IMG/VR virus record: IMGVR_UViG_3300035665_000001
Location: 124,001-188,000 of that record
Length of the DNA stretch: 64,000 nucleotides
Direction: 5' to 3' (one strand)
Shown: positions 35,592 through 61,792 of the stretch, piece by piece
How the letters are laid out: each line of letters starts with the position of its first letter
Numbering within the stretch: the stretch's first letter is position 1
Made by a program: the position numbers and the translations under genes
Notes under the pieces: generated by a model
What the model saw: only the letters and a program-made list of their open reading frames with translations
Told to the model about the DNA's origin: nothing
The model's database searches: none

Positions 35592-35675
35592 TATTTCTCC
35601 CAATTAAATTGATTTAGTTGTTTTTAAGAATTATACAATAGTTTTACTTGTAATGATATTAGAAATATGATGCTA

Positions 35676-44169: not shown

Positions 44170-45351
44170 ATGAAATCCGATAATTCAATCAGCTATCATT
44201 ATGTTTACAAAATTACAAATATTAATCCTCCTGATGAAAAAAAGTATTACATTGGTGTTAGAACAACCAAAAATAGAACACCTCAAGAGGATAGTAGTTA
44301 CATGGGATCATCAAAACATTTAAAATCCGCGATTAAAAAACAAGGAAAACAACATTTTTTTAAGGAAATATTATCTACTTGGAATTCAAGGGATGAAGCA
44401 AATGTAGAAGAAATAAGATTACATTCATTGTACTCAGTTTCGAGTAATGTCGAATATTACAATATGGCAGAAGCTGTAAGTGTTGGGTTTTGTACATACG
44501 GAAATGTTCCCGTTATCGATACAAATACGGGTAAAACACTTTCAGTGTCGTTAAAAAATTTTAATGAAACTTGTCATTATGTAACAAATTCAAAAGGTTG
44601 GGTATCTGTTATTGATACCCGAACAAATGAAACTACAAGAGTAACAGTGGAAAATTATCATCGATATGGATATTATAAGTGTATCAACACAGGTACCTTA
44701 GTGGTTATTGATACTCGAGACAAAAAGCGAAAAAAAGTGTCGGTAGAAGATTATTACAAACACGAACATTTTGAATGTTTGAGTGTGGGAAAATTAACGG
44801 TTAAAGATACTCGCACAAACAAACTAGTTAAAGTTTCAGTTGATGATTACTATAGATATGATTATTTTCAACATCCCTTCATAGGTCAAGTTACAGTAAT
44901 TGATACACGTGATGGAACAGTGAAAAATGTAAGTAGAGAAGAATTTTTAAATAATAATCATTTTGTTTCACCCTCAAAAGGTAGAGTCAGTGTTATCGAT
45001 TTGCGAGATGGTGTTAAAAAAATGGTTTCACAAGATGAATATCAAAATAATGAGTATTTCGTTTCTCCTGTCAAAGGGTTAGTTACAGTTATTGATACTC
45101 GTGATGGAGTAACTAAAAATGTCACGAGAATGGAATATCAAAGCACCGATAATTATATTTCGGTGGCAAGTAAAAAAGTGAATATTTACAATGCCTCACA
45201 TGAGTTAAAATATACCATTTGGGGAAAATTTAGAGAAACCTGTGTCAAACTAAAAATCCCTGCGAGATTATTTAAAGAATCGTGTAACAATAACTCAAAA
45301 CCCATTGTACACAAAAAATTTAATGGTTGGTATGCGATTGAAGTAAAATAA
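44170..45351 (+). CDS. Free-standing GIY-YIG homing endonuclease with seven 32-aa repeats
   Basis: YVYKITN...YYIG.R, YMGSS..L..AI.K.G...F.KEIL, YYN; repeats every 96 nt from 44500. Confidence 0.85.
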   Translation: MKSDNSISYHYVYKITNINPPDEKKYYIGVRTTKNRTPQEDSSYMGSSKHLKSAIKKQGKQHFFKEILSTWNSRDEANVEEIRLHSLYSVSSNVEYYNMAEAVSVGFCTYGNVPVIDTNTGKTLSVSLKNFNETCHYVTNSKGWVSVIDTRTNETTRVTVENYHRYGYYKCINTGTLVVIDTRDKKRKKVSVEDYYKHEHFECLSVGKLTVKDTRTNKLVKVSVDDYYRYDYFQHPFIGQVTVIDTRDGTVKNVSREEFLNNNHFVSPSKGRVSVIDLRDGVKKMVSQDEYQNNEYFVSPVKGLVTVIDTRDGVTKNVTRMEYQSTDNYISVASKKVNIYNASHELKYTIWGKFRETCVKLKIPARLFKESCNNNSKPIVHKKFNGWYAIEVK

Positions 45352-45357
45352 TCCAGC

Positions 45358-46110
45358 TTATTGGTATTCATCCCCATAGTACAAATCCTGAATATCGATT
45401 TCTCTGATTTCACCTGTTTTTTTGTTTCTAATAGTAATCTGTGTTTTACCATCCAGACAGTAAACAAATTTTAGCGATTTACCCCTAGCTGCGTTCGCAG
45501 TTGTAGCTTCCGCAATGATACGCATACCATTATCAAATTCTACCGAGGTTTCATTGTTCTTAATCATCCCAGGTTTTAACCAGTTTGGAGCAGAATAATA
45601 CATATCTTTTATTCGCTTCAATACTTCAACAGAATGTGCTTGTTTGTGAGCAACAATTAAAATATCCCCTTTTGCTACAGGAAAACATGCTTCATAAAGT
45701 AAATAAAAAGCACCAATGGTTGTATTATGACTGAGAATGCCATTCGTATAATATCGATGATCTTCACTTTCTACCGAAAGGTCATACATAGGTGTTGATT
45801 CGATTGTTTTCTTTACAGAAATTATTTTTTCTAATCCATCTTCTGTTACAATGAAATCATCAACGGTTAAATCTTTTACAAAAATTGAATTGTAATTACT
45901 ATCAAAAACAATATGATTATCTGCACATTCCAATATGTGATTTTCAGTAATCACTTCCCATACACAATAATCAACGGTCTTATTACTACCAATTATTTTT
46001 TGAAATCCCGTGTCTGTATTTACTGACCACCCATCAACTAAAAGTTGTTCAATAAATTTTTGTTTTTCATTCATACTGTATCCATTAAGTTTTTCACAAT
46101 TCAAAATCAT
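45358..46110 (-). CDS. terL: Terminase large subunit piece 2: IntC - ATPase extein (88 aa) - IntN
   Basis: ECADNH, MYDLSV...YYTNGILSHN|TT; extein AHK, NETSVEFDNG.RI.A.AT...A.RGKS; then CLDGKTQITIRNKKTGEI..IDI.DLY*. Confidence 0.9.
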   Translation of the reverse strand: MILNCEKLNGYSMNEKQKFIEQLLVDGWSVNTDTGFQKIIGSNKTVDYCVWEVITENHILECADNHIVFDSNYNSIFVKDLTVDDFIVTEDGLEKIISVKKTIESTPMYDLSVESEDHRYYTNGILSHNTTIGAFYLLYEACFPVAKGDILIVAHKQAHSVEVLKRIKDMYYSAPNWLKPGMIKNNETSVEFDNGMRIIAEATTANAARGKSLKFVYCLDGKTQITIRNKKTGEIREIDIQDLYYGDEYQ

Positions 46111-46233
46111 CGATTATTTCTAATTATACAATTGGTTGTGAAATAATTACAAAAACAGTCAAATTTTTTTGATGATTAGCTATCAAATATCTATACCACA
46201 TCGGTAAAAGTTTGATGACTTATGGTTGGGGTT

Positions 46234-46279
46234 GTCAATTACCCCAACCTAAAGGTCGGGGTTTTTCGGCAGAGCGAGG
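46234..46279 (+). mobile_element. IS200/IS605-type (IscB-like end) miniature scar
   Basis: GTCAATTACCCCAACCTAAAGGTCGGGGTTTTTCGGCAGAGCGAGG then ATAAATA. Confidence 0.65.
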
Positions 46280-46318
46280 ATAAATATCAATATGGTTCAC
46301 TTTAAATGGGTGGTAACA

Positions 46319-47086
46319 ATGATTAAAGATATTATAGTTGGTTCAAGTAGTTATACAGGTGTTCCTGCAACTGGTGCACAAATTACGTTCACAACACCTG
46401 GAACTTATACGTGGATATGTCCATCCAATGTAACTACGGTTTGTGCAGTTGCCATTGGTGGTGGTGGTAGTAGTGGAGCATACTATACTGGTGGTGCTGG
46501 TGGTGGATTATCTTATTTAAACAATATCGCTGTAACGCCAGGTCAATCTTATACCGTAGGTGCAGGTGGTATCGGTTCAGGTGGTATCGGTTGTATTGCA
46601 GGTGGTATCGGTTCAGGTGGTATCGGTTGTATTGCAGGTGGTATCGGTTCAGGTGGTATCGGTTGTATTGCAGGTGGGAATAGTTCAGTATTTGGTATGG
46701 TAGCTGGTGGAGGTGGTGGAAATAGTGCCCCTGGTTATAATAATGCACCACCACAAGGTGGTTATGATAATGCGGGAACTAGCGGGAGATCACCATACAA
46801 CTACTCTACTAACAGTTCAATTTACAACGTAGGTGGTGCTGGTGCTGGTGGTACTGGCATTTTTGGTGGAACAGGTGGTGGAACAGGTGGTGGAACAGGT
46901 GGTTTGCCTGGCGGTATAGATAACTCCAATAATACAACTACTATCAGTGGTTCGGTTGGTATTGGTGGTGGTGGCGGATCAGGGTGTGGATATGACTATA
47001 TAGATTCAAAAGGTGGGAATGGAGCAGTTAGAATAATTTGGGGTTCTGGTAGAGCTTTTCCTAATACAAATACGGAGGATTTATAA
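46319..47086 (+). CDS. Glycine-rich fibre protein (rearranged paralog of 18566)
   Basis: MIKDIIVG leader; PGTYTWICP...; GGNGAVRIIWGSGRAFPNT. Confidence 0.7.
   Translation: MIKDIIVGSSSYTGVPATGAQITFTTPGTYTWICPSNVTTVCAVAIGGGGSSGAYYTGGAGGGLSYLNNIAVTPGQSYTVGAGGIGSGGIGCIAGGIGSGGIGCIAGGIGSGGIGCIAGGNSSVFGMVAGGGGGNSAPGYNNAPPQGGYDNAGTSGRSPYNYSTNSSIYNVGGAGAGGTGIFGGTGGGTGGGTGGLPGGIDNSNNTTTISGSVGIGGGGGSGCGYDYIDSKGGNGAVRIIWGSGRAFPNTNTEDL
46562..46677 (+). repeat. Perfect 36-bp tandem repeat, three copies plus a partial
   Basis: GCAGGTGGTATCGGTTCAGGTGGTATCGGTTGTATT at 46562, 46598, 46634. Confidence 0.95.
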
Positions 47087-47379
47087 TGAAAATGTATATT
47101 GAACTTAAAGATGGAGTTATTCACAATCATCCTATTTTGGAAGATAATTTAATTCATTTAGGCTTTGATATTAATAACTTACCAAATAATTATGTTGAGT
47201 TTGTTAGAGATGATTATTCCATTTCATCCACAAAATTAAAAGCTGGACAATGGTTGGAATATTATGCAGAATATAATGAAGCAAATAAAATAGTGTATGA
47301 ATATTCTATAGTTATGGGTGAGGCTATTCCTGCAGATCCAAATATGTTTCCTCCAGGGTTACTGATTGGTCGTGAATAG
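47086..47379 (+). CDS. Putative fibre chaperone (paralog of 19807)
   Basis: MYIE..DGVIH.HPIL.DNL; RDD.SIS. Confidence 0.6.
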   Translation: MKMYIELKDGVIHNHPILEDNLIHLGFDINNLPNNYVEFVRDDYSISSTKLKAGQWLEYYAEYNEANKIVYEYSIVMGEAIPADPNMFPPGLLIGRE

Positions 47380-47448
47380 TTTAGGGTGGTGAAGTAATTT
47401 TTTTTTTAATCATAAATAATTCAAATCGGGTAAATTAGAGGGTATGTT

Positions 47449-50082
47449 ATGATTAAGGATATTATATTAGGTTCATCAGAAACATTGACATCGACAGGCA
47501 GTGGTTCTGGTGATTCAAATTGGGATAAGGTAAGTTTATTATTAACCGGAAACAGTTTGTTAGATAGTAGTTTGTCAAACAATACTGTTTCTATTGTAGG
47601 CAACACGACTACATCATCTACACAGAAAAAATACAATAACACTAGTATTTATTTTGATGGTAGTGGTGATGAACTGTATGTTTCAAAAACAACTAGTCAG
47701 TTGATTGGACTATCAAATGATTTTACTGTTGAATTATGGTATTATGCTGATGGTAATCAATCTGCGTGGACGGGTATTATAAACAACTATCAAAGTGGTG
47801 GTTGGGGTTCAAATTCTAGTTGGTGGCTTGGATATGATGGTTCAGGTAGTAATGTACAAATTGGTGTAAAAACGGATTCTTCTCAAACATCAACTACACC
47901 AGTAAATGTTTCAGTTAATACATGGCATCATATTGCGTTTGTGCGTTATGGAAACAATTATACCATGTATCTTGATGGTGTTGGTGTAGGAACAGTTACT
48001 AATTCGGGTACGATAGTAGATACCAGCACAAAATTGGAAATTGGTGCCTGGGGTAATAATGTATATAATGTTAAAGCTTATATGAGTGACATTAGAATTA
48101 CAAAAGGTGTTGCTAGATATACTACAACATTTACACCACCTATTTCATCATTACCAACAGCAGCATTTGTTGCGACATTAGCAACACCAGCTTCCGATCC
48201 TAATACATCTAAATATGTTACTCTCCTATTAAATGGTGAGGGAACAAATGGATCTCAAAACAATACGTTTATTGATTCATCCTCTAATAACGCAACCGTC
48301 ACTAAATATGGTGATGTTACTCAAGGTTCATTTGGACCATTTGGTAATTCGTGGAGTGTTTATCTTGATGGTGCTGGGGATGATTTATATATACCTACTT
48401 CTTATGGTATTGGAGTTGGAGATTTTACTGTTGAAGCCTGGGGATATTTAAATGTACTATCTTCATGGAGTGATATTATCTGTTTTATTGGTAGTACATC
48501 ATGGGGATTAACCACGAATAACGGTGATATTGGTGCTTATAACATTGGTATAAACACATCGGGCACTATAATACCTACAAATTCATGGAACCATTTATCA
48601 ATTACGAGACAATCGGGTACAGTTAGATTATTTTTAAATGGTAGTCTTATAGGATCATCCACAAATAACACATCATTGGATAATACAAGTGTTAGAATTG
48701 GTGCCTGGGTATCATCTGGTACTGAAAACTGGAACGGTTATATTTCAAATCTTAGAGTAGTAAAAGGTACTGCACTTTATACCTCTAATTTTACTCCACC
48801 AACATCACCTTTAACAGCAGTTTTGGGAACAGTATTGTTGACTTGTCAATCAAATTGGATAAAAGATAATTCAGTCAATAATGTAACAATAACAGTAAAT
48901 GGTGATACTAAAGTAGTTAAAGATAGTCCTTTTCCTGAAGTTTATGATAAAACTGTTCATGGTGCAAGTGTTTATATACCATCAACGAGTTATTTGTCCA
49001 TACCTACCTTAGCAAATTATGGATTAGATGGGGATTTTACTGTTGAGGCATGGATTTATCCAAATAGTTATTCGACGTACGCCTATATTTTTTCAGTTAC
49101 TAACAATCCTAATGGGTTTGTATTTTATATTAATGGTGGTTATCTTAAAGTTCGAGCATATTATAACACTGATTTATTGTCCGTAACTGCACCACCATTA
49201 AATGTATGGTCTCACGTTGCCGCAACCAGAAGTGGTTCAACACTTAAAATTTTTATAAATGGTGTTCAAATGGGCAGTGTATCCAATTCAACCATTTTTC
49301 CTGCAAATGCTATTAGAGTTGGTGTGGATGGTACTGGTGGTGACTGGAATGGATATATATCAAATTTAAGAGTAGTGAAAGGAAGTGCACTCTATACTAA
49401 CAATTTCACTCCACCATCATCACCACTAAACATCGTTACAAATACATCAGTTTTATTGAAATTCGATAATGCTGGAATTATTGATTCTAGTGGGAAAACT
49501 GATTTAACAACTTATGGAAATGCTCAAATTAGTACAACATCAAAAAAATTTGGTACAGGTGCTATCTACTTTGATGGTAGTGGTGATTATCTAATAACAC
49601 CTCCAATATCAAGTAGTTATTTGATTGACACCACTGTTAACTACACTATAGAATGTTGGGTAAATATTACTGCAAATCCAAATACAGGTTATGGTCCTGT
49701 ATTTGTTTTAAATGGTGGTAGTTCAGGTACAAATGGCATTAGTGTTTGGATTTATAATAGTACCATCAATTTTTGGAATAATGGTTATTCTGCACCATTT
49801 GGTACATCAGGAAGTATTAGTTTTAATACCTGGTACCATATCGCTTATGTAAAAAATGGAACTACACTTACAGGTTATGTGAATGGTATATCTGTTGGAA
49901 CTGCAACTACGGTTACTGCAAACGGTGCTACTAATCAAATATATATTGGTGGAACATCCGCCGGTAAATCGTGGGATGGTAATTATTCATATTTGGGTTA
50001 TATTGATGATTTTAGAATTACTAAAGGAAAAGCTCTTTATACTAGTAATTTTACACCACCCACAACATCATTAACATTATAA
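47449..50082 (+). CDS. Four-domain LamG-like receptor-binding protein 2
   Basis: Same framework as 22452; MIKDIILG leader; late motif at 47412. Confidence 0.85.
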   Translation: MIKDIILGSSETLTSTGSGSGDSNWDKVSLLLTGNSLLDSSLSNNTVSIVGNTTTSSTQKKYNNTSIYFDGSGDELYVSKTTSQLIGLSNDFTVELWYYADGNQSAWTGIINNYQSGGWGSNSSWWLGYDGSGSNVQIGVKTDSSQTSTTPVNVSVNTWHHIAFVRYGNNYTMYLDGVGVGTVTNSGTIVDTSTKLEIGAWGNNVYNVKAYMSDIRITKGVARYTTTFTPPISSLPTAAFVATLATPASDPNTSKYVTLLLNGEGTNGSQNNTFIDSSSNNATVTKYGDVTQGSFGPFGNSWSVYLDGAGDDLYIPTSYGIGVGDFTVEAWGYLNVLSSWSDIICFIGSTSWGLTTNNGDIGAYNIGINTSGTIIPTNSWNHLSITRQSGTVRLFLNGSLIGSSTNNTSLDNTSVRIGAWVSSGTENWNGYISNLRVVKGTALYTSNFTPPTSPLTAVLGTVLLTCQSNWIKDNSVNNVTITVNGDTKVVKDSPFPEVYDKTVHGASVYIPSTSYLSIPTLANYGLDGDFTVEAWIYPNSYSTYAYIFSVTNNPNGFVFYINGGYLKVRAYYNTDLLSVTAPPLNVWSHVAATRSGSTLKIFINGVQMGSVSNSTIFPANAIRVGVDGTGGDWNGYISNLRVVKGSALYTNNFTPPSSPLNIVTNTSVLLKFDNAGIIDSSGKTDLTTYGNAQISTTSKKFGTGAIYFDGSGDYLITPPISSSYLIDTTVNYTIECWVNITANPNTGYGPVFVLNGGSSGTNGISVWIYNSTINFWNNGYSAPFGTSGSISFNTWYHIAYVKNGTTLTGYVNGISVGTATTVTANGATNQIYIGGTSAGKSWDGNYSYLGYIDDFRITKGKALYTSNFTPPTTSLTL

Positions 50083-50242
50083 TACAAATTTAATCATTTT
50101 AATCCTATTACATTTTTTTAAGTGTGATAGGATTTTTTACTCTCGCAATTGACTTAAAAACACATACCCTAATTGTGATGAATGTTTCCTATAGGATGAA
50201 GATAAATAACTGTATCGACTAATTACAAATGAGGAGTAATAC

Positions 50243-52855
50243 ATGATTAAAGATATTATATTAGGTTCATCCGAAATAGTAACAGTAAGTGGTACAGGTG
50301 ATCCAAATTGGAGTAACGTTGCGTTGTTATTAAATGGTGATGATTTATTGGATCATTCGAGTAATTCTAAAACCATAACTGTTAATGGTACTATATCAAT
50401 TAATACAACTACAAAGAAATACGGAACAGGTTCATATTATAGTTCATCTGCTGGAAATTATTTAACAGTTACAAATATGGGTTTATTTGGATCTTCTAAT
50501 TTTACAATGGAAGGATGGTTTTATAAGATAGCTAGCACTGGAAATGGGTTGACAAGTTATTTTTCATATAACCAATATACGGATGGTATTTTATTCCGCG
50601 ACGATTGTTTATATATTAATGGTTTGAATTTAGGTTCATTTTCATCAGGTTTATCAACAAACACTTGGCACCATATAGCATTAGTCCGTGATGGAAACAC
50701 TTTTACAATTTATTTAGATGGTGTGTCGACTAAACAATATAGTAGTAATGCTGTTATTTCACCATCATCCACAACAACATTATGGGTGGGTGCGGCATCA
50801 CATAATGCAGGTAGTGAAGGGTTTTATGGGTATATTGATGATGTAAGAGTAACTAAAGGGGTTGCGGTTTATACTGCAAATTTTACACCAACACAATTAC
50901 AGATTGGAGCTTTCACAACTTCACCTGTTTCTGCTTCCGATCCAAATACATCGAGATATGTTTCTTTATTATTAAATGGTGATGGTACAAACGGTGCACA
51001 AAATAATACTTTTGTTGATAGTAGTTCAAGTAATTTGACTGTTACTAGGTATGGTGATTCAACACAGGGCTCATTTGGACCTTTTGGTAATAGTTGGGGT
51101 GTTTCTTTTAATGGTGCATCCGATTATTTAGAGGTACCAACAGCTTTTGCAGGTTTAACAAATACAACATCACCATTTACAGTCGAAGGTTGGTTTAATA
51201 GTAATATATCTATTTCTGGTATTTGTCCAATCGGTATGAATAGTAAGAGTTCAGGGACAAATGTTTTATTATGGGGTGGTGATTTATGGGTAAATAATAC
51301 GAATGTATTTTCATTTAGTACAAACCATACCGATGTAGTAAAATATAATTGGTATCATGTTGCTATTTGTTACAATGGATCAACAGTAAAATGGTATGAA
51401 AATGGTAATTTAATTTATACTTATAATGGGGCATTAACAGTTGCACCTAATGATTGTACATTAGGAATTGGTGCTGAATTTGACGCTGCAAATGGTGGCA
51501 GTCCAGGCAATTATCATAATGGTTACATAAGTAATTTTAGAGTTAGTAATATCGTTCGTTATACATCGAACTTTACACCACCAACATCTAATTTTGTTTC
51601 AGATACAAATACTTTACTATTAACCTGTAGTGGTAATATGTTTAAAGATTATTCATCACTTAATAAAACAATATCAATTTTTAATACACCAAAAATTGTA
51701 AAGGAATGTCCATTTCCAGAAGTGTATGATAAAACTGTTCAAGGTGGAAGTGCTTATTTTGATGGTACAGGTGATTATTTGACTACTAATGGAGTATCTA
51801 TTTCATCAGCAACAAATTATACCTTAGAATTCTGGTTTTATACCACCGATGTAACTGCAAGTTATCACAGAATTATTCATAATAACTCCAATGGTAATAT
51901 TTATTATTGGTACACCAATGGGACAACATTATATGGTTATAATGCTGACATTGGTACCCTTATTTCTGCAGGGACATTTGTTCCAGGTCAATGGACTCAT
52001 GTTGCGATTAGTAGAGTGAGTACAACGACCACGGTGTATTTAAATGGGGTTTCTACAAAAACGTATTCTGGTTCAAGTGCATTCACTACGATTGGTAATA
52101 CAATTGGTGGCGGTCCAGCTTCAGAATATTTTACTGGATACTTATCTAATATTCACATTGTAAATGGTACAGCATTATATACCTCCAATTTTACACCATC
52201 AACATCTCCATTAACAGCAATTGCAAACACCTCATTACTATTGAAGTGTGATAATGCTGGTATTATCGATGCAATAGGTAAAAATGATTTGGTTACTTAT
52301 GGTAATGCTCAAATTAGTACAGCTAAGAAAAAATATGGTACAGGCAGTATGTATTTCGATGGTTCAAATGGTTATTTGGTAATACCCCACAATACCAATT
52401 TAAATATGGTAGGAGGTAATTTTACTATTGAGTTTTGGGCTAATTTTGCGGCAAATCAAAACGGTCCTGTTATTTCGAAATGGATAAATGGTAAAGGTGA
52501 ATTTTATTTTGGTATTCATAATTCAGCAGTACAATGTGCAATTTTAAATAGTTCCAGTGCTGGGAATACCTCTGGTGGTACATTTTGTTCAGCAGGTGCA
52601 TTTACAACGAATGTTTGGAATCATTGGGCTGCGGTTAGAAATGGTGATAATATTTTAATGTTTAAAGATGGTGTTTTACAATCAACTACATCATTTACTG
52701 GTAATATTTTTACATCTGATTCAAAATTAACATGTGGGTATAATTTAGACAATGGTTGGACAATAAACGGTTACATAGATGATTTAAGAATCACAAAAGG
52801 GAAAGCGTTGTACACATCAAACTTTACACCTCCATCTACACCACTAACACCATAA
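50243..52855 (+). CDS. Four-domain LamG-like receptor-binding protein 3
   Basis: Same framework; MIKDIILG leader; late motif at 50202. Confidence 0.85.
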   Translation: MIKDIILGSSEIVTVSGTGDPNWSNVALLLNGDDLLDHSSNSKTITVNGTISINTTTKKYGTGSYYSSSAGNYLTVTNMGLFGSSNFTMEGWFYKIASTGNGLTSYFSYNQYTDGILFRDDCLYINGLNLGSFSSGLSTNTWHHIALVRDGNTFTIYLDGVSTKQYSSNAVISPSSTTTLWVGAASHNAGSEGFYGYIDDVRVTKGVAVYTANFTPTQLQIGAFTTSPVSASDPNTSRYVSLLLNGDGTNGAQNNTFVDSSSSNLTVTRYGDSTQGSFGPFGNSWGVSFNGASDYLEVPTAFAGLTNTTSPFTVEGWFNSNISISGICPIGMNSKSSGTNVLLWGGDLWVNNTNVFSFSTNHTDVVKYNWYHVAICYNGSTVKWYENGNLIYTYNGALTVAPNDCTLGIGAEFDAANGGSPGNYHNGYISNFRVSNIVRYTSNFTPPTSNFVSDTNTLLLTCSGNMFKDYSSLNKTISIFNTPKIVKECPFPEVYDKTVQGGSAYFDGTGDYLTTNGVSISSATNYTLEFWFYTTDVTASYHRIIHNNSNGNIYYWYTNGTTLYGYNADIGTLISAGTFVPGQWTHVAISRVSTTTTVYLNGVSTKTYSGSSAFTTIGNTIGGGPASEYFTGYLSNIHIVNGTALYTSNFTPSTSPLTAIANTSLLLKCDNAGIIDAIGKNDLVTYGNAQISTAKKKYGTGSMYFDGSNGYLVIPHNTNLNMVGGNFTIEFWANFAANQNGPVISKWINGKGEFYFGIHNSAVQCAILNSSSAGNTSGGTFCSAGAFTTNVWNHWAAVRNGDNILMFKDGVLQSTTSFTGNIFTSDSKLTCGYNLDNGWTINGYIDDLRITKGKALYTSNFTPPSTPLTP

Positions 52856-52871
52856 TTATGTGTTGAAATTT

Positions 52872-52910
52872 AAAACCCCTTCCATTTAAATAATTGGCGA
52901 AGGGGTTTTA
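52872..52910. terminator. Bidirectional terminator
   Basis: AAAACCCCTTC...GAAGGGGTTTT between convergent genes. Confidence 0.7.
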
Positions 52911-52914
52911 ATCA

Positions 52915-53790
52915 TCATTGTATAGTTAATACTGTATAGTAATTTTTTGGTTCATGAAAAAATGTAGTGTAATCAGAAACAACATTTACCAAAGAAAGTG
53001 TATTGTTTGTGGATTCAATTTTCTCAATTTTTTCTAAATCAAACATAATGTATGGAATAAAATATCCACCCCCATCTGCCATAATTTTAATAGTATTACC
53101 TACGTTATTATAGGCTAACAAAATTTTATCACCAATTGCCTCATGTATTCGGATTTTAATATTCTGATTGATGTAAAAAGAACCATCATCTTTACAATTT
53201 AAAAATTTTTTCTCTACATCCAAGATTTTAAAGTTACTAAATGTTTTTGATGATATTACTATCACATTTGCAGTACCTCTTCGATTTTTTCTACCAATGT
53301 TATTTGCTTCATTTTGAATGATACCAAAAATTTTAATATCAACATCATCCACAAAAGTAAATTTTTCTGCACGATCAACAATTTCACATAACATCTTATT
53401 TTCGATTGATTCATATAAAACTGAAAAGGTGTCATGTAAATTATGTTGTGGTGTTTTATCTTGTTGCAATGTATCTAAAAAGTCTAAAGTAATTTGACAT
53501 ACAGATTCATTATCTGTTTCTACCACAATATCATCGGTTTGTAATGAAAAAGAAGTGTTGGAATCATTAGAAACATACATAAATTTTATGGTATCCTGTT
53601 TTTTTGATACAGGTTGTATCTGCATAATATCATTAATGATTGATTTTTTTAAAAAATTAACTACAGCATTCAAAAATATATTCTTAGTATCTTCAGTCTG
53701 AGATATTAACAGTTGGTTTGATAGTAGTTGTATTGCAACATTATGTTTACCGCAACCTGGTGTAAAATCAATTTTTTCTACAATTTGCAT
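52915..53790 (-). CDS. Shortened T4 gp23/gp24-like capsid protein paralog
   Basis: IMQIQPV, I.NEAN.I.R.NRRG.AN.I..S, L.Y.....DGGGYF.PY, NYY motifs; only 291 aa. Confidence 0.65.
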   Translation of the reverse strand: MQIVEKIDFTPGCGKHNVAIQLLSNQLLISQTEDTKNIFLNAVVNFLKKSIINDIMQIQPVSKKQDTIKFMYVSNDSNTSFSLQTDDIVVETDNESVCQITLDFLDTLQQDKTPQHNLHDTFSVLYESIENKMLCEIVDRAEKFTFVDDVDIKIFGIIQNEANNIGRKNRRGTANVIVISSKTFSNFKILDVEKKFLNCKDDGSFYINQNIKIRIHEAIGDKILLAYNNVGNTIKIMADGGGYFIPYIMFDLEKIEKIESTNNTLSLVNVVSDYTTFFHEPKNYYTVLTIQ

Positions 53791-53799
53791 AATTTTCCT

Positions 53800-54414
53800 C
53801 TAACGATTTTTAATTAATGGTTGTGTTTCTTCACCAAAAAATAATTTTTCAGTTTTATATTTTTTTAGCCAATTAGCGGTATCTTTAGCTTGTTCAATAA
53901 ATTCTGGTGACACCTTCTCCCATCGCTCATCTGATTCAGAATCCCAACCACCTTTTGTTTTATCAGGAACATAATTTTCCAATGAATGAATTACTTCATC
54001 AATAGTTTTATATTCACTAAAGGCACTTTCAATCATGCTCGCAGAATGTTGTTTTAACCCAGGAATTGTATTAATACCCAACAATTCTTCTGCATGACAT
54101 TTAGTACAACTGCACGGAACACAAGTGCAATCACCAATATGAATGCCACTTAATTCAGTTAGGAATATATCAAATAATTCATCAACTCTTTCATCTAATT
54201 TAGATTTTATATTATCTTCTGGACACCAATAATCAATATCTAAATCTTTTCGGATTTTTTCAATATCATAATCTGTTTTTTTAGATTCAAACCAAGCAAA
54301 TTCAATAATATTTTCCATTCTGGAAATTTTTATCTTTAACCAAAATTCTTTTTTGTCTGATTCTGTTAATTCAACTATCGAATCTAGTGGATTATCTTTA
54401 TATATTATATGCAT
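53800..54414 (-). CDS. Hypothetical protein with HxGDC..VPCSC.KC metal motif
   Basis: Cys/His cluster; TAGTATAAT upstream. Confidence 0.65.
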   Translation of the reverse strand: MHIIYKDNPLDSIVELTESDKKEFWLKIKISRMENIIEFAWFESKKTDYDIEKIRKDLDIDYWCPEDNIKSKLDERVDELFDIFLTELSGIHIGDCTCVPCSCTKCHAEELLGINTIPGLKQHSASMIESAFSEYKTIDEVIHSLENYVPDKTKGGWDSESDERWEKVSPEFIEQAKDTANWLKKYKTEKLFFGEETQPLIKNR

Positions 54415-54535
54415 GTTATGTAAGTTTTGTAATAATTAAATGGTTATCAATGTCAATTATACTATATTCTTTTAGAGGTAAAAAAAACCTAACAAGTTAT
54501 TTGTTAGGCTTTTTAATTATGATGTTAACTAAGAT

Positions 54536-54982
54536 TTAAACAAAAAGTTTATTTCTTTCACCAGCAAACCATGATGCGAATTTCATCCAATCTTTATCAC
54601 TGATAGGCATAGATACACCATTTTCCATTTTTAATACAGTAGAATTAAACGCATTATTCATGATTGCAATTGTAATTGCAGCCACTGTATCCTGTGTTTC
54701 TTTAGTTAATGTAATTTTATAAGTTTTACCATTCAACTCATAATCTACACCAGCTCTTTTAGCATCTAAAGCCGCTAAATCTGCAGCTACTTTTTCTTCT
54801 TGTGCTTTAAGTTCTGCAGCTGTAAACGCTCTAATGTCACCATTAGTTTCTTTAATTAATCTTCCTTGGAAAGTAAAACCTTCTTGAAGTGTATCAAAAC
54901 CAGTGGTATCAAAATCTTCTGCAGGATTAACAATAATTTCTGTTGATATACCATCTTTACCAAATTTAACGTATGTAGTCAT
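54536..54982 (-). CDS. Tail-fibre assembly-like protein
   Basis: Downstream of a fibre gene; GV.Y.....Y.I, NG...I...D...F..WF..ERN.LF. Confidence 0.55.
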   Translation of the reverse strand: MTTYVKFGKDGISTEIIVNPAEDFDTTGFDTLQEGFTFQGRLIKETNGDIRAFTAAELKAQEEKVAADLAALDAKRAGVDYELNGKTYKITLTKETQDTVAAITIAIMNNAFNSTVLKMENGVSMPISDKDWMKFASWFAGERNKLFV

Positions 54983-55009
54983 TTTAAATATCTCCTTTTT
55001 TTAGTTTAA

Positions 55010-56341
55010 TTATCTATTGCCATAATCTCTGGCACATGCAGTCCAGATATTTGCAAAGTTAGCAGTAGTATAACCTAAATTCCATTTTGATGAATTTAAC
55101 GTTGCTAACATTCTTAAATCACAAATAGTAGATGAACCATCAATTAATGTGGAAAGATTGTAAATTTTATTAATATCAACAAATGTTTCACCACCATTAC
55201 TACTAGTCCATTTATACATTGAAGCAGATAGTAAAATAATAACTGTAGTATTGGCAGGAATAGTAACAGTCATAGATGAATTGTTAGGTGTATTTCCACC
55301 TGTATATTGATATACATACGAATGACTTGTATTTGTAACAGAATTATAAGTTGTGGCATTTGGCGTAATAACTACTGCACCAGATCCTTCATGACCATAC
55401 ACCCACCCTGCAGCAAAATCCCAATACAACGTTTTATTTAATGATGACCCTGTTGTGTTTCTAACTGGTATTGCTAGGAATGAGTTTGGACAGTAACCAC
55501 CGTTATTGTAGGAGCCGTTGTATGCCGCTTGATAACTTCTATCTGTACCAACGATGTTATCGTGTCTAGCCCATAGAATTTGTGGACCTGGTTGTGCATC
55601 CGAACCAGAAAAACCATCATGTGTTGAATGTGAGGTTCCCAAACCATAACCAGATAATAAACACATTGCCTGAATTAATGAGGTATCACCATTTCCAGAT
55701 AGATAAGAATAATATGTTGTCCATGGTCCACTACTTGAACTTACTGGATAACCAGAAGCTCTATCCCATACGTTGTATAACGCACCTACAGAATAACCTT
55801 CTTTACCTTGATAACTGGATGCACTTGTTGATGCACTGCTAGCATTAACAACAGTAGTAGAAATAGATGCATTTCCAGTTCCATCAAATGAAACTGAACC
55901 AGTAACGTCCCCAGTTAATGCGATTGTTCTTGCAGTTGCTAATTTAGTGGCAGCAGCAGCAGTTGCAGTTAGACCTAATTTACCATCAATGTTTGTTTGT
56001 AATGTTGTAACTGCTGAAGCTCTTGTAGATACTTCACTTGCCAAATTGTTGGTTAAAGTGGTAATTGCTGAAGCTCTTGTAGATGCTTCAGTTGCCAAAT
56101 TATTGGTTAAAGTAGTATCTGCGTTTTGTCTTGCGGTTACTTCCGCAGTCAAATTATTGGTTAAAGTGGTATCTGCTGCTTGTCTTGCAGTTGCCTCAGT
56201 AGTAATCGCTGTTGAACGAGCAGTTTCAGCTGCGGTAATAGCAGTTTGCAATGCAGTGTCTGCTGCTTGTCTTGCAGTTGCCTCATTTGCGATATTAGTA
56301 GCAACAACACTACCGATTTTTTTAAATATTGAATCGACCAT
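55010..56341 (-). CDS. Tail/whisker fibre (MVDSIFKK family) with a unique tip domain
   Basis: EATARQAAD repeats; ATKLATARTI.LTGDVTGSVSFDG motif. Confidence 0.8.
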   Translation of the reverse strand: MVDSIFKKIGSVVATNIANEATARQAADTALQTAITAAETARSTAITTEATARQAADTTLTNNLTAEVTARQNADTTLTNNLATEASTRASAITTLTNNLASEVSTRASAVTTLQTNIDGKLGLTATAAAATKLATARTIALTGDVTGSVSFDGTGNASISTTVVNASSASTSASSYQGKEGYSVGALYNVWDRASGYPVSSSSGPWTTYYSYLSGNGDTSLIQAMCLLSGYGLGTSHSTHDGFSGSDAQPGPQILWARHDNIVGTDRSYQAAYNGSYNNGGYCPNSFLAIPVRNTTGSSLNKTLYWDFAAGWVYGHEGSGAVVITPNATTYNSVTNTSHSYVYQYTGGNTPNNSSMTVTIPANTTVIILLSASMYKWTSSNGGETFVDINKIYNLSTLIDGSSTICDLRMLATLNSSKWNLGYTTANFANIWTACARDYGNR

Positions 56342-56847
56342 TTGTATCTCCTATTTAATAATTTTTAATTTCAATAAATCATTTCATTTTTTAAAATGAA
56401 ACATCACCTAAATAGTGAAGTTTCTATACCTATTTCTAGGTCTTATAAAGATTTTTATTCCCTAAGAAAACCATAATATTTTCTATTTCAAGGACACACA
56501 TTGTTTTAATTTCTTAGAAAATACAATGACCATGAATTAAAAATATTATGATTTTCTCATCCTTTATATCCATACAAAAAGTGGTATTTTAGAAAAGGGA
56601 TGATAAAAAATTAAATAATTCCACTTTTATTTATTCACAAACATCAAAATGATGATGAGTTGATGGGAAAATAACCATGAATCCAAAATATAGTATTTCT
56701 AAATTTTAGTTTTGTTGGTATTAAATTTTTAATATATCAACTATTTTACATTTGACCACTTAATTGACTAAAAATATTTATTTTTTGAAGTTAAAAAAAC
56801 TCCAACATATTAAACATTGGAGTTTTTAGTAGAGTAAATATTAACTA

Positions 56848-57210
56848 TTATTTACTTGGTTCTACAGGCCATGCAATTTGCTCAGGTGTTGTAACATAGG
56901 GTTGAACACTTGGAAAATTACGTAATGCATTACGATAAGCTGCCCATTCTGCTTTTTTTGCATCTGATAATGCCGCGTCTGGAAGTTGTGTCCAATCAGA
57001 CATTTTCAATAAATCTGTACGAACAGTTCTAATATAATTAAAGAACTGTTCGTTGGTTGGAGGAACGATTGTTTCCGCCTCAAAATATTCAACATACCCT
57101 AATTCAGCTAAACCGACTTGGTCTTTTAAACCTGTTCTAGCTAATACATCCAAATATGGTATTTTACTTTCTGTAACAATACCACCAACTTCTAAATTAT
57201 AATAAACCAT
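56848..57210 (-). CDS. Tail-fibre assembly chaperone
   Basis: R..R..LL..SDWTQLPD...WA.YR.ALR..P...I.WP..P; start at MVYYN. Confidence 0.85.
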   Translation of the reverse strand: MVYYNLEVGGIVTESKIPYLDVLARTGLKDQVGLAELGYVEYFEAETIVPPTNEQFFNYIRTVRTDLLKMSDWTQLPDAALSDAKKAEWAAYRNALRNFPSVQPYVTTPEQIAWPVEPSK

Positions 57211-59381
57211 TACATATCTCCTGTACCTGTTGATGGGAATGAACGACCAGATCCCCAAATTATACGAACGCAACCACGACCACCTTTATTTAATCCGTAA
57301 CCCATTGGACTACTACTACCAGTTCCGCCACCGCCACCGCCATATAAACCACCTACTTTTGTACCAAAAACACCTATACTCCACCATGGGTTTTCACCAA
57401 TGTCACCATCTGTACCACCGGAACCACACATACCACCCGAATGTGCCCGTGAACTTCCTGATGTACCTTGACCAAATGGACCAACACCACCACCTGCACC
57501 TGTACCATAAGTAGAAGAGTACATATAACCACCTGCTGCACCGCCACCAGATCCATTGTGATTGGCACCATTTTCTCCAGATCCACCGTTTCCTGTATAA
57601 CCGCCGGCACCACCACCAGAACAAGCCCATTGTCCTGAACCATAACCACCATTACCACCACCACCTCTATATGCTCCACCACCACCAGCATTACTACCAT
57701 TGGAACCGCCATTAGCATAGAGTGTAGATGTATTTATGAAGTATGATTGACCACCGGATAAATCACCACCATTCCCATCACCACCTTTACCAACTTGAAC
57801 CGTATAATCTGTACCTGGTGTTACTGGAATGTTATTACCCCACGATAAAGCTCCACCAGCTCCACCACCATAAGACCATTGTGAACCACCACCAGCTCCA
57901 CCACCGATACAAACTACAGAAACAGATGTTACCCCAGGAGGACATCTCCATGTATAAGTACCATGTCCAGAACCATAGAAAGCTTGTCCAACTAATGAAC
58001 CACTACCACCAACAACAGTTCCAGAAACAGTAGTAGAAATAGATGCATTTCCTGTTCCATCGAATGAAACCGAACCAGTGACGTCACCAGTTAAAGAGAT
58101 AGTTCTTGCAGTTGCTAATTTAGTTGCTGCTGCTGCAGTTGCAGTTAGACCTAATTTACCATCAATGTTTGTTTGTAATGTTGTAACTGCTGAAGCTCTT
58201 GTAGATACTTCACTTGCCAAATTGTTGGTTAAAGTGGTAATTGCTGCTTGTCTTGCAGATGTTTCAACAGCTATAGCAGCTGCTTGTGCAGTTGAAACAG
58301 GTTTTGATAAGTCGGCTGTATTATCAACGTTAGTTAAACCAATTGCTGATTTATCTAATACACCATTTACAAAATTAGTACCATTCCATTTAATAATGTC
58401 GTTCACTTGTTTATTTGAAATTAATACATCATTTAATGAACCTAAAGCATGGTTATGATTGGTTTTACTATAGGTAAGATTTGTAAACTCTCTAGTTGCG
58501 ATAGTTTCAAATGTTCCACCAATTTGACCAACTTTGAAGAAATCATCTAATTCATCAAATAATAGAGCAAAATCAGACATATCACCACGATCAACTTGGA
58601 TACCAGCTTTACCTAAAGTAACACCTGAACCAATTTCTCCGGAATTAACTACAATAATGTTATCTTTAACATTTACAATTGTTGAGTTTACAGATGTTTG
58701 TGTACCGTTAACTGTTAAGTTACCACCAATAGTTAAATTACCACTCAATTGTTGACTAGTTCCAGAAATAGTGCTACTAAACACAGTTGGTGCAGATACT
58801 TGTACCTCATTAGTTGCACCAATACGAACATTAGAACCGGTACCAACTGCATTTAAAAATACGTCAGCGTTAATTCCTGATGTAGATATATTTACTGATT
58901 TTTCAGATTCAACTGTAGTTGTGCCAGTCCCAGAAGTTTTCATATCAATTGACTGATTACTATCTGAATGAATGTTAATTGTAGTTGCAGTTGTACCCAA
59001 AATAGCTGTATCACCAATATACAATGTATTTGTCGATAATTTGGCTTCATCAACGAAGATTGTTTTAAATCTTTGTGTTACTGAACCAATATCAATGTTA
59101 GCACCGCTTGGTAAAATTGTACTTGCTACAGTAAGTGATTTTGCATTGAAATCTTGTAACACGCTACCTGCTAAATTGGCTTTTAATGCATCTGCAGCTT
59201 TATAGGCTGTATCCAGTGCATTAACTGTATTCGATAATGTAGTAATAGCAGTTGTTCTAGATGTATTTGCAGAGGCAATATCAGCAGATAAACTATTATC
59301 AGCTGCCTGTCTTGCAGATGCTTCATTTGCAACAGCGGTTGCAACTACACTACCAATTTTTTTAAAAATTGAATCAACCAT
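57210..59381 (-). CDS. Tail/whisker fibre (MVDSIFKK family) with a glycine-rich tip
   Basis: GNLTVNGT, DNII..N, GLTNVDNTADL.KPVSTAQ, ARTISLTGD, Gly-rich GCVRIIWG tip. Confidence 0.82.
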   Translation of the reverse strand: MVDSIFKKIGSVVATAVANEASARQAADNSLSADIASANTSRTTAITTLSNTVNALDTAYKAADALKANLAGSVLQDFNAKSLTVASTILPSGANIDIGSVTQRFKTIFVDEAKLSTNTLYIGDTAILGTTATTINIHSDSNQSIDMKTSGTGTTTVESEKSVNISTSGINADVFLNAVGTGSNVRIGATNEVQVSAPTVFSSTISGTSQQLSGNLTIGGNLTVNGTQTSVNSTIVNVKDNIIVVNSGEIGSGVTLGKAGIQVDRGDMSDFALLFDELDDFFKVGQIGGTFETIATREFTNLTYSKTNHNHALGSLNDVLISNKQVNDIIKWNGTNFVNGVLDKSAIGLTNVDNTADLSKPVSTAQAAAIAVETSARQAAITTLTNNLASEVSTRASAVTTLQTNIDGKLGLTATAAAATKLATARTISLTGDVTGSVSFDGTGNASISTTVSGTVVGGSGSLVGQAFYGSGHGTYTWRCPPGVTSVSVVCIGGGAGGGSQWSYGGGAGGALSWGNNIPVTPGTDYTVQVGKGGDGNGGDLSGGQSYFINTSTLYANGGSNGSNAGGGGAYRGGGGNGGYGSGQWACSGGGAGGYTGNGGSGENGANHNGSGGGAAGGYMYSSTYGTGAGGGVGPFGQGTSGSSRAHSGGMCGSGGTDGDIGENPWWSIGVFGTKVGGLYGGGGGGTGSSSPMGYGLNKGGRGCVRIIWGSGRSFPSTGTGDM

Positions 59382-59570
59382 TTTGTATCTCCTTTTAAAT
59401 AATTTTGGGTTAATAGATTTTTTTTCATTTGAAATTTGAATAAATCCAACTTTATTTATCCAAATTTCAAAATATACATGATATTTATTTTTTAAAAAAA
59501 TATCACAAAATTCATATTTTAATATGATTTACTTTTATTATTTTACATTCACAGCGATAAAAATAACAAA

Positions 59571-60890
59571 TTATTTTTTTAAAATTAATGGGTTTTGACT
59601 ACCATATATTAATGCCGAATCAATATCCTCAATATCAAATGTTCTTTCACATTCATGACACTGATAACATTGTGATTTACATACAGATAATATTTTTTCT
59701 AATCTTATTCCTTTTTCAGTCATCCAAATATTATTATATAGATATTTTTCTTTAATTTCGGTGTAAATGTCGGGTGTTAAGTATCTATATTCATGATCAT
59801 CTGTTACTCGATTTAGTTTCCAGGTACTCATTGGAGCTGCTTCTAAATTATAAATATTTTCAAAGGTTTTGTCGATGATGATATAATCTTTTTCACCAGT
59901 CAAACCAAATTTTTTTGTTGCACTAACTGCTGCCGCACCAAATGTCCAGGCTAAATGAATGTTTTTATCTATTATATCCTGTTCACTGAAAGTTGAAAAA
60001 CTATCTAATCTACCCGAATATTTTAAAATATCTACATTTTCAAAATATTGGTCTTGTGTTTCTCTATGATTTGCTTCAATATTAACACCATTTCTAGGTA
60101 GTTGACCAAATATTGGATTTCTCCAATTGTTACATGTAAAATTGGCTAATGTTCTAAAATAATTAACACTGATCGATGAACCAATATCATCATGTTCCTT
60201 TTTAAAGGGGCATCTATACAAACATCCTTCAGTAACTAACAGTGATGTTTTTAATTGTTTTGCATTAGGATCTAATTCTTTTTTTATGGTATTATATTTA
60301 TCAATGATTTTCTTTGTTTTTTTAAGTTCTGGTATATTTCTATTATAGGATCTGTCTAATAATATGGTATCATATCCCAAACTGATAAATTCGACCACCT
60401 GTTGTGTATCTGAAACAATATGATTGACCGTGTTTTTCCAACGCATTTCTGGACATCTATGTTGTAATGCACCACTTCTTAATAAATGTGTCCAAGCAAT
60501 TGTACAACTTCTTAACCCTCTGTCATAAAAAGCACCAATCCAATCGAGAAATTGGTTTCCAATTTCAGGATTAGTTTGTAGTTCTTCAGGCACTTCTAAA
60601 GTGTTTAATGTCAAAGAAATTTGTACACCTGTTTCTTCTTGAATTTTAAATAAATTGTCTACCTGTGCATCTGTTGCTTCAACACCCATACAATTACCAT
60701 ATTTCTTTTTTGTACCATTACTTTCAAAATAGAAATATTTACCGAAATAAATGTCTTCAATTTCAGCCAATGTTTCTTTTGGTGTTTGTTTTATAAGAAG
60801 ATAAAAATGGTTGGGTGCATTTTCCATATGTAGTTCTGGATGTGCTATCGAAAATCTTTTTTTAAAATTTTGTGTCTGGGTATGTTCCAT
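59571..60890 (-). CDS. U32-peptidase-like (possible Fe-S) protein
   Basis: LTLN, NTVN, I.LDR..NRN, LLVTEGCLYRCPFKKEHD, DILKYSGR, C-terminal C..QC..CH.CE. Confidence 0.5.
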   Translation of the reverse strand: MEHTQTQNFKKRFSIAHPELHMENAPNHFYLLIKQTPKETLAEIEDIYFGKYFYFESNGTKKKYGNCMGVEATDAQVDNLFKIQEETGVQISLTLNTLEVPEELQTNPEIGNQFLDWIGAFYDRGLRSCTIAWTHLLRSGALQHRCPEMRWKNTVNHIVSDTQQVVEFISLGYDTILLDRSYNRNIPELKKTKKIIDKYNTIKKELDPNAKQLKTSLLVTEGCLYRCPFKKEHDDIGSSISVNYFRTLANFTCNNWRNPIFGQLPRNGVNIEANHRETQDQYFENVDILKYSGRLDSFSTFSEQDIIDKNIHLAWTFGAAAVSATKKFGLTGEKDYIIIDKTFENIYNLEAAPMSTWKLNRVTDDHEYRYLTPDIYTEIKEKYLYNNIWMTEKGIRLEKILSVCKSQCYQCHECERTFDIEDIDSALIYGSQNPLILKK

Positions 60891-60956
60891 AATTTTCGTT
60901 CCAATTTTAATTTGATATTATTATATTATTTTACATTAAAAATCATTTTCATGTGA

Positions 60957-61298
60957 TTAATGTTTGGTCATATCATGAAATTCTTTAATAGTAAACTCCA
61001 TTATTTCACCAGTTAAATCATTCCTTACAGTGATGATTGAATTTCCTTTTACACATTTACTCATTTGACGACTAGCTAAAAGAATAGATCTTTCAGAATT
61101 TTGAAAAAGATCTAACATTTCAAATTGATATGGTTTGATAACCTTTGCAAAATTAACAGGTCCATCGGATGTATTAATATCACAATAATAAGTAAACCGT
61201 TTTAATCCTGTTGGTCTTCTCATTAATCTAGCCATTTCCATAGTTTGTTCTAATGAAAGTGATATTTCCTGATTTGCTCTCCTAATATAATCTGCCAT
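60957..61298 (-). CDS. terL: Terminase large subunit piece 1: N-terminal extein (81 aa) plus 32-aa IntN
   Basis: PYQ..ML, SILLASRQMSK| followed by CVKGNSIITVRNDLTGEI..FTI.EF*; late motif at 61331. Confidence 0.88.
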   Translation of the reverse strand: MADYIRRANQEISLSLEQTMEMARLMRRPTGLKRFTYYCDINTSDGPVNFAKVIKPYQFEMLDLFQNSERSILLASRQMSKCVKGNSIITVRNDLTGEIMEFTIKEFHDMTKH

Positions 61299-61589
61299 AA
61301 TATGGTATCCTTTTGTTGTATGATTTATGCTATTTATTTTACATTTGATTTGGTGGTGTAATAATCTATATTTATAAGGTGTTAAAACATGATTATTATC
61401 TTATGGTGATAAATTCTATTTTAGATGATATTTTCTTTTTCTTTTTGCTGAAAGCAGATGTTATCCTCAAGGGAGCTTCTTAAAAAGAAGCTCCTCTTTA
61501 AGATTCTTTAATATCTATTCTTTAGGAAAATATTTTTCGTTTTTATACTATATTAATAAGGGGTTTTTTCGAGGGTGTTCAAAAAAATT

Positions 61590-61787
61590 CATTTTCTATT
61601 GGGAGAAATCAATTTTTTTTCATTTTCTATTGGGAGGAAATAACGAAAATTCATTTTCTATTGGGAAAGATTCAAATATCATTTTCTATTGGGAAGTTAT
61701 TTTTCATTTTCTAAGGTATAATAATATGTAAAATATTTCATTCTATTCTTTGAATGAAAATGAAAAATAACTTCCCAATAGAAAATG
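61590..61787. repeat. Iteron-like array (putative replication origin)
   Basis: CATTTTCTATTGGGA at 61590, 61621, 61652, 61680; partial at 61705; inverted copy at 61773-61787. Confidence 0.85.
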
Positions 61788-61792
61788 AAAAA

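Follow-up and report, generated by a model that had tools for sequence, protein, structure and literature searches.

Atypical split inteins and 'fractured' genes are both known from phage terminase. The Lake Gatun terminase is 'fractured' by a split intein with an unusual 122-residue C-terminal part (Dassa et al. 2009, PMC2677866), and the AceL-TerL intein (with an N-terminal half, IntN, of 25 aa), the GOS-TerL intein (37 aa) and the consensus Cat intein, which derive from the Lake Gatun family, splice in vitro (PMC11766414, PMC13014065). In the 'fractured genes' of Dassa et al. 2009 an N-half, a free-standing homing endonuclease and a C-half lie on one strand (PMC2677866). Two cultured T4-like phages, Aeromonas phage PX29 and Yersinia phage MHG19, carry an atypical split intein together with a GIY-YIG endonuclease in the gene for the large terminase (TerL), genes 17A and 17B of PX29 being annotated in GenBank as 'N-intein' and 'GIY-YIG endonuclease and C-intein'. 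Klebsiella phage Magnus has a contiguous intein (annotated 'intein') after the Walker A lysine of the same protein. Here we describe the TerL of the freshwater phage in IMG/VR virus record IMGVR_UViG_3300035665_000001 (linear, 306,333 bp, 30% G+C, CheckV completeness 85%), part of which lies in a stretch of 64,000 nucleotides comprising bases 124,001–188,000 of the record (the window, whose coordinates are genome coordinates minus 124,000). Sequence comparisons make it likely that this T4 gp17-type TerL is encoded by four genes and three atypical split inteins, and that trans-splicing would yield the working enzyme. The original prediction, made from the window alone, had proposed two inteins and three or more pieces. 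This holds as a lower bound, the actual count being three split inteins and four pieces.

The locus resembles each of the described systems in part. With the AceL, GOS and Cat inteins (PDB 6DSL) it shares a gp17-type myovirus host protein, class-1 chemistry at an initial cysteine (Cys1) and a short IntN (25–37 aa there) complemented by a C-terminal half (IntC, 104–122 aa there) that holds blocks B, F and G. Those systems have one split and two halves, whereas here three inteins occupy one gene, two of them at other sites. PX29 and MHG19 are split at the site of our third intein and likewise have a GIY-YIG endonuclease, but their terminases consist of two adjacent pieces with one intein. The Magnus intein is homologous to the first IntC of this phage, and the same site carries contiguous inteins in many cultured phages. 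Magnus-type inteins are cis-splicing, whereas the intein here is split after about 32 residues and its halves are encoded 15 kb apart. As in fractured genes, split-intein halves are found at the breaks, and GIY-YIG or Vsr-like genes lie beside pieces 2, 3 and 4. However, the pieces are scattered and the GIY-YIG genes converge on them rather than lying between two halves; the arrangement that marks a fractured gene, with same-strand halves flanking an endonuclease, is not seen here but occurs in a relative at junction 2. Engineered ligation with orthogonal split inteins also joins several fragments in a defined order (PMC7090010); that is a laboratory design with unrelated inteins, whereas the process here would be natural and would use three related atypical inteins. 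In the open-access literature that we searched, we found neither a split intein described at site 1 nor any intein at site 2, and no terminase with more than one split.

Two of the pieces are minus-strand open reading frames (ORFs) within the window, and both are present with the junctions that had been read from the window sequence. Piece 1 (window 60957–61298, minus strand) encodes 113 aa, an 81-aa N-extein followed by a 32-aa Cys-initiated tail. Extein 1 (61056–61298) runs from the TerL N-terminus to the Walker A lysine, ends in LASRQMSK and aligns with T4 gp17 124–166. The tail, IntN1 (60960–61055, CVKGNS...TKH), corresponds to the short N-terminal half of split intein 1 and is followed by the stop codon at 60957–60959. 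Piece 2 (window 45358–46110, minus strand) lies 14.8 kb from the piece 1 ORF and encodes 250 aa counted from the first ATG. Nearly all homologues of piece 2 have a length of 238 aa and begin at the position of Met13, so the true start is probably M13, at window 46074. The first part of piece 2, IntC1 (45724–46110), is therefore 129 aa from the first ATG or 117 aa from M13, and contains block B (CADNH), block F and a terminal SHN that precedes a Thr at the +1 position. Extein 2 (45460–45723, 88 aa, TTIG...RGKSLKFVY) matches gp17 residues 167–253 at E about 1e-11, and spans the remainder of Walker A up to just before Walker B. The piece closes with IntN2 (45361–45459, 33 aa, CLDGKTQ...), the short N-terminal half of split intein 2, and a stop codon at 45358–45360.

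The original prediction had placed a third piece, beginning with an IntC followed by CDE, outside the window. We scanned the whole record for missing pieces; the terminase family phrog_36964 continues where piece 2 stops (profile position 522), and a match to it was found on the plus strand at genome 230,010–230,798 (L007:4010–4798). This piece 3, of 262 aa, consists of IntC2 (108 aa, ending SKN), extein 3 (108 aa) and a Cys-initiated IntN3 (46 aa). Extein 3 (CDEIAFIPN..WKIEFE) opens with the CDE that had been foreseen, includes the TSTPNG motif and matches gp17 246–300, and IntC2 matches CatC, the C-terminal half of the Cat intein, at E 9e-8. Piece 4 (436 aa) lies on the minus strand at genome 200,201–201,511 (L008:4201–5511). 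It comprises IntC3 (111 aa, ending THN) and extein 4 (325 aa), which starts with CAFITFE and contains the nuclease domain; piece 4 matches the gp17 nuclease domain of phage RB49 (3C6A) at E 6e-4 and CatC at E 8e-4. An ORF at genome 200,204–201,526 was considered as piece 3 and ruled out, as its CAFITFE start would leave the Walker B region absent. The order of the genes along the genome is 2-1-4-3, spread over 61 kb with one strand switch (piece 3 is on the strand opposite to pieces 1, 2 and 4). No two pieces are adjacent, and distances between them are 15–45 kb.

Joined in silico, the four exteins sum to 602 aa, compared with 610 aa for T4 gp17. The joined product gives a single collinear BLASTP alignment with gp17 (38–505 against 124–566, 27% identity, E 1.9e-37), compared with E 3e-3, 2e-18, 9e-6 and 1e-6 for the separate exteins. 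Site 1 falls at gp17 K166|T167, following the Walker A lysine, and the gp17 Walker A motif is re-formed when pieces 1 and 2 are joined, as had been claimed. Site 2 falls at Y253|I254, directly before the Walker B residue D255 and the catalytic E256, and site 3, by comparison with the split gp17 of PX29 and MHG19, at H352|T353, the end of the ATPase domain. The ATPase motifs SRQMSK|TT, KFVY|CDE and TSTPNG align with gp17 161–167, 251–256 and 285–289, and the nuclease motifs TIDPS, FERNG and YTDDR with the regions of D401, E458 and D542. The breaks thus lie inside or beside essential motifs, and therefore no single piece can be an active motor. A tblastn search of the joined product against the record returned exactly four loci. 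No other terL was found in the 306-kb record, where an intact copy would have told against the original prediction, and a search for three other terminase families gave no match.

The intein halves have the features of atypical split inteins. The three IntN halves are 32, 33 and 46 aa long and each begins with Cys, and the IntC halves of 117 (129), 108 and 111 aa hold all of blocks B, F and G. The block B motifs of IntC1, IntC2 and IntC3 are ADNH, SETH and SGEH, and the junctions with the following exteins read SHN|T, SKN|C and THN|C. The assignment to the atypical class, made before any database search, agrees with homology of all three IntC halves to solved atypical split inteins; IntC1 matches VidaL (6VGV) at E 2e-5 and CatC (6DSL_B) at E 8e-5. 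The end of piece 3 (EFE|CMYPDT) aligns with CatN, weakly (E 0.16 with a 57-aa query), and the crystallised CatN chain starts with the native N-extein EFE. Intein 3 thus appears, by its sequence and insertion site, to be allelic to the known AceL/GOS/Cat TerL intein.

To judge conservation, we aligned homologues that are 38–76% identical to the pieces of this phage, using 47 for piece 2, 42 for piece 3 and 28 for piece 4. Every homologue in the three sets keeps the terminal Asn and a +1 nucleophile (47/47, 42/42 and 28/28), the +1 residue being T or S in the IntC1 family, and the block B His is equally invariant (47/47, 42/42, 28/28). Cys1 of the downstream IntN is kept in every homologue that was aligned (47/47 for IntN2, 42/42 for IntN3). 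The penultimate His is present in 45 of the 47 homologues of piece 2, 35 of the 42 of piece 3 and all 28 of piece 4. Among the halves of this one genome, identity is 22–38% for IntN and 27–44% for IntC.

Together these features suggest the following mechanism. The proteins would be used in the order extein1-IntN1, IntC1-extein2-IntN2, IntC2-extein3-IntN3 and IntC3-extein4. Each short IntN (32–46 aa) would dock in its cognate long IntC (108–117 aa) and so complete the HINT fold. Class-1 splicing would then proceed by an acyl shift at Cys1 and transesterification to the +1 residue (Thr, Cys and Cys at the three junctions), followed by Asn cyclisation and an acyl shift back to a peptide bond. In this way the exteins would be joined and the inteins discarded, and three such trans-splicing reactions would give the 602-aa terminase. 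With the P-loop and Walker B cut by the breaks, the unspliced pieces are predicted to lack activity. Joining at the RNA level by group I or II introns was also considered, and set aside because no Rfam family matched in the window or around pieces 3 and 4.

Relatives provide empty sites and intermediate arrangements. The IMG/VR search gave only three related contigs. The relative G001 is an IMG/VR contig of 289,880 bp, 87% complete, whose orthologous proteins are 22–76% identical to those of this phage. Here exteins 1 and 2 are fused in a 202-aa ORF (L010/P0167) that reads LASRQMSK-TTLAAVYLLYE, an empty site for intein 1, so that the RQMSK-TT junction reconstructed from pieces 1 and 2 is found uninterrupted in a natural protein. 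The fused ORF ends in a homologue of IntN2 and is followed by a 711-aa endonuclease-like gene and then by piece 3, 3.6 kb downstream on the same strand. By its gene order, junction 2 of G001 is a classical 'fractured gene'. Piece 4 of G001 lies about 80 kb off on the other strand.

In large protein collections we found 645 homologues of piece 2, 77 of piece 3 and 90 of piece 4. Homologues of piece 1 form 141 representative clusters, of which 96 are stand-alone and end in K|C plus a tail of 28–60 aa. Architectures were counted among the matches listed by the homologue searches. On this basis IntC1-extein2-IntN2 occurs 91 times, IntC3-extein4 85 times and IntC2-extein3-IntN3 51 times. Mosaic forms are also present in the same lists: IntC1-extein2-extein3-IntN3 (13), extein1-extein2-IntN2 (8), extein1-extein2-extein3-IntN3 (8) and a contiguous intein 1 (2). 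Junction 2, predicted as KFVY|CDE, reads uninterrupted as KFVY/KIVY-CDEM in P0123 and P0264, an empty site for intein 2, and P0264 is empty at site 1 too. In P0122 and P0127 intein 1 is a contiguous mini-intein of 155–163 aa that aligns end to end with IntN1 plus IntC1, which sets the split of intein 1 after about 30 residues, before block B. No contiguous intein 2 was found at exactly site 2, although P0169 and P0192 have inteins at positions close by, and site 3 is uninterrupted only in distant proteins (T4 gp17 and that of Salicola phage SCTP-2).

Three of the relatives show further peculiarities. In P0169 a contiguous mini-intein precedes CIFIDE and a split IntN starts immediately after DE, so that the extein separating the two inteins is 6 residues long, and in P0192 a contiguous mini-intein is followed directly by a second IntN-like segment (HN|CITGDNT...). 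The insertion points in both differ from site 2 of this genome, and the Walker B region is an intein hot spot. The 67-kb relative that encodes P0118 has a 238-aa piece-2 gene with tightly packed genes of 115 aa and 253 aa upstream on the same strand. Judged from gene sizes alone, this fits an order of piece 1, endonuclease and piece 2; an IS605/Cas12f-like TnpB pair lies nearby.

A cultured phage has a comparable arrangement. Salicola phage SCTP-2 (MF360958) has a complete 440-kb genome in which TerL is present only as three dispersed pieces, a state of which we found no published description. Extein 1 and IntN1 lie in a 131-aa open frame near 429.4–429.8 kb on the minus strand. Gene 267 (256.4–257.3 kb, plus strand), the sole piece annotated as terminase, encodes IntC1-extein2-IntN2, and a 709-aa ORF (L024; 216–218 kb, minus strand) encodes IntC2 and the remaining enzyme. 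SCTP-2 is like this phage in having a dispersed TerL on both strands, atypical split inteins at sites 1 and 2 and the same piece 2 architecture. It differs in having three pieces and an uninterrupted site 3, in an extra large contiguous intein, inserted in the 709-aa ORF before TGGKCIITTTP, and in an IntC2 that ends in Gln rather than Asn (VSQ|CDE). Since SCTP-2 is grown in culture, having a terminase that is dispersed and split more than once evidently does not prevent a phage from being viable.

Several observations weigh against a terminase made by three splicing reactions. Splicing itself, the pairing of cognate halves and the activity of the 602-aa product we infer from sequence. IntC2 of this phage has Lys at the position of the penultimate His, one of three such cases in its family and the sole non-canonical residue, and this Lys could slow Asn cyclisation. 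Since the IntN halves are related (22–38% identity) and the allelic TerL IntN halves of known inteins are interchangeable (PMC11766414), mis-pairing may be a real possibility; the middle pieces, 2 and 3, may likewise cyclise, as each carries both an IntC and an IntN. A four-chain complex prediction, with piece 4 trimmed to 380 residues and piece 3 as the partner, scored 0.36 against 0.10 for the best control, with a tool verdict of 'weak support'; the mark is attained in 58 of 80 solved complexes, against 2 of 110 mismatched pairs, and, at 0.60 or under, in only 7 of those 80. Confident contacts were predicted between piece 3 residues 216–250 (IntN3) and piece 4 residues 2–110 (IntC3), and between extein 3 and exteins 1 and 2; none was predicted between IntN2 and IntC2. 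The separate pieces do not reach Pfam thresholds, PF03237 (Terminase_6N) scoring 13 bits on piece 2, where the cut-off is 22, and PF17289 (Terminase_6C) giving no match. Such sub-threshold scores are expected for fragments of a divergent terminase member, and PHROG TerL families match the pieces at E 3e-29 (piece 2), 2e-10 and 1e-5. Finally, the record is a linear metagenomic contig, 85% complete, leaving room for an intact terL in the missing part.

Some of these points would be accommodated if the four polypeptides assembled non-covalently, with the intein halves serving as high-affinity docking modules, no peptide bond formed at one or more junctions, and the terminase acting as an enzyme of several chains. 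The Lys in IntC2, the Gln end of the SCTP-2 IntC2 and the lack of confident docking of IntN2 in the complex prediction are all in its favour, and assembly without splicing is reported for a fragmented phage ribonucleotide reductase (PMC3045599). Docking, however, would need none of Cys1, the block B His, the terminal Asn or the +1 nucleophile, which are invariant across the 28–47 homologues aligned per piece. An unspliced HINT domain at junctions 1 and 2 would also be expected to obstruct the active site, and the related AceL, GOS and Cat TerL inteins do splice in vitro (PMC11766414). We therefore regard purely non-covalent assembly as improbable. That the pieces are decaying remnants of a terminase gene disrupted by mobile elements, with a functional terL supplied by the unsampled ~15% of the genome or by a helper, would agree with the incomplete contig and the missed Pfam thresholds. 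It is nevertheless very hard to reconcile with four intact ORFs, each with dozens to hundreds of homologues of the same architecture in which the catalytic residues are kept, and with exact extein-intein boundaries that pseudogenes would lose; moreover, G001 (87% complete) and the complete SCTP-2 also have only a split TerL.

The dispersal could instead reflect a chimeric or mis-joined assembly of pieces that are really adjacent as a classical fractured gene. The record is, after all, a metagenome assembly, and in G001 the fused piece 1+2 and piece 3 are only 3.6 kb apart on one strand. Against this, a second contig in IMG/VR, which comes from a different metagenome, matches piece 2 and its flanks at 100% identity, and Logan contigs from independent samples of lake water run past either end of piece 2 into the neighbours found here and show 0 differences. 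Many metagenomes of lake water, dated 2016 to 2024, contain the locus. In G001, too, about 80 kb separate piece 4 from the other pieces, and its gene context is conserved in both genomes; SCTP-2, which is an isolate genome, is dispersed as well. Even with adjacent pieces the split inteins would remain. A mis-assembly is thus highly unlikely, and trans-splicing of four dispersed gene products stays the preferred account.

Comparison of protein synteny with G001 bears on how the pieces could have become scattered. Besides the shared context of piece 4, the context downstream of piece 3 is conserved, and piece 1 still adjoins the orthologue of the gene that flanks the fused piece of G001. This pattern fits rearrangements with breakpoints in the gaps of an ancestral fractured gene. 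The present state probably arose in steps, in which mini-inteins at conserved terminase sites would have been fractured by free-standing homing-endonuclease genes, and later rearrangements with breakpoints in those gaps would have scattered the pieces, the 'fractured gene' state surviving in relatives.

Candidate endonuclease genes are found beside three of the pieces. A SegE-type GIY-YIG homing-endonuclease gene (window 44116–45351, plus strand; Pfam SegE_GIY-YIG E 5e-9, phrog_314 E 1e-18) converges on piece 2, whose 3' end is 6 nt distant, and a 40%-identical SegE-type paralogue (L008:3074–4204) is placed likewise at the 3' end of piece 4. The ORF after piece 3 is Vsr/DUF559-like, with weak Pfam matches and a match to phrog_22677 at E 5e-23.

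The pieces had also been proposed to be separately promoted, on the strength of motifs upstream of pieces 1 and 2 that are both present as claimed. The T4-type late-promoter motif TATAAATA lies at window 61369–61376 on the minus strand, 78 nt upstream of piece 1, and occurs again 44 nt upstream of piece 3; piece 4 is preceded by CATAAATA, which has 7/8 bases of the T4-type late motif. Genome-wide, 31 of the 57 copies of TATAAATA lie 8–100 nt upstream of an ORF, compared with 11–29% for composition-matched octamers, and the motif thus behaves like a promoter element. The extended -10-like TGTATAAT (window 46123–46130, minus strand) lies 20 nt before the first ATG of piece 2 and 56 nt before M13. 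Generic sigma-70 and terminator scans gave no more sites than chance, judged for sigma-70 against shuffles. Because the promoter scan gave no excess over shuffles, TGTATAAT is a putative promoter element of unproven function. Separate promotion is accordingly borne out in part, by the late motif exactly before pieces 1 and 3 and at 7/8 bases before piece 4, and not by the sigma-70 scan.

If the terminase is assembled as proposed, it would be the first natural multi-fragment protein trans-splicing cascade. Known natural split inteins join two halves, whereas here an essential enzyme apparently needs three ordered events among the products of four scattered genes, which would widen the scope of natural post-translational gene assembly. 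The case is notable for how often the gene is split, for split sites that are new, for the scatter of the pieces and for an unrecognised abundance in metagenomes and in one cultured phage. We lean, by a modest degree, towards the broader view that a widespread clade of large freshwater and saline phages ligates its packaging motor post-translationally from 3–4 polypeptides through co-evolved, mutually orthogonal atypical split inteins. Because the breaks lie in ATPase catalytic motifs and the pieces would have promoters of their own, splicing could gate the timing of motor activation. The locus would also show to what extent a virus can survive the breaking up of a core gene by selfish elements, here inteins and homing endonucleases, and annotation or completeness tools that expect a single terL will miss or mis-score the clade. 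Atypical split inteins with a short IntN are prized labelling tools, of which only a few natural examples are currently employed (PMC13014065, PMC11766414). Sets of three inteins that have to coexist in one cell are available from this locus and from its hundreds of homologues, and they are candidates for orthogonal pairs in multi-segment ligation.

Between pieces 1 and 2 (window 46292–59381) lie genes for two proteins of about 870 aa, with four LamG-type (Laminin_G_3) domains each, two Gly_rich_2-domain proteins, a 291-aa gp23-like protein and ORFs of unassigned function. Within one of the glycine-rich proteins is a tandem repeat at which Logan contigs are broken or differ by small indels (46471–46482). 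Immediately downstream of piece 1, a 439-aa ORF (window 59571–60890, minus strand) matches only PHROGs of unknown function and has no Pfam match. It occupies the place expected for a homing endonuclease in a fractured gene, and its homologue in G001 is elsewhere. Divergently, upstream of piece 1, lies a gene for a Rep3 plasmid-type replication initiator (window 61754–62962, plus strand; Rep3_N E 7e-8, Rep3_C E 6e-9).

Intein halves in this genome extend beyond the terminase. At least nine IntC halves occur at ORF starts, three in TerL and six in other replication genes, and therefore several essential genes appear fractured. The six were named by eye, with two halves in ribonucleotide reductase, one in a topoisomerase/gyrase-like gene, one in the C-piece of a gp41/DnaB-like helicase and two in a RecA/UvsX-like ATPase. 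They lie at window 35019–35603 (minus strand) and at genome 108775–110465, 117459–118694 and 241513–244611, the helicase C-piece being inside the window. Between the helicase C-piece and the expected place of its N-piece lies a 366-aa ORF (window 35763–36863, minus strand) that reads, by eye, as a response-regulator receiver fused to an HD-GYP-type domain (HHEKWDGTGYP), an unusual cargo for a phage.

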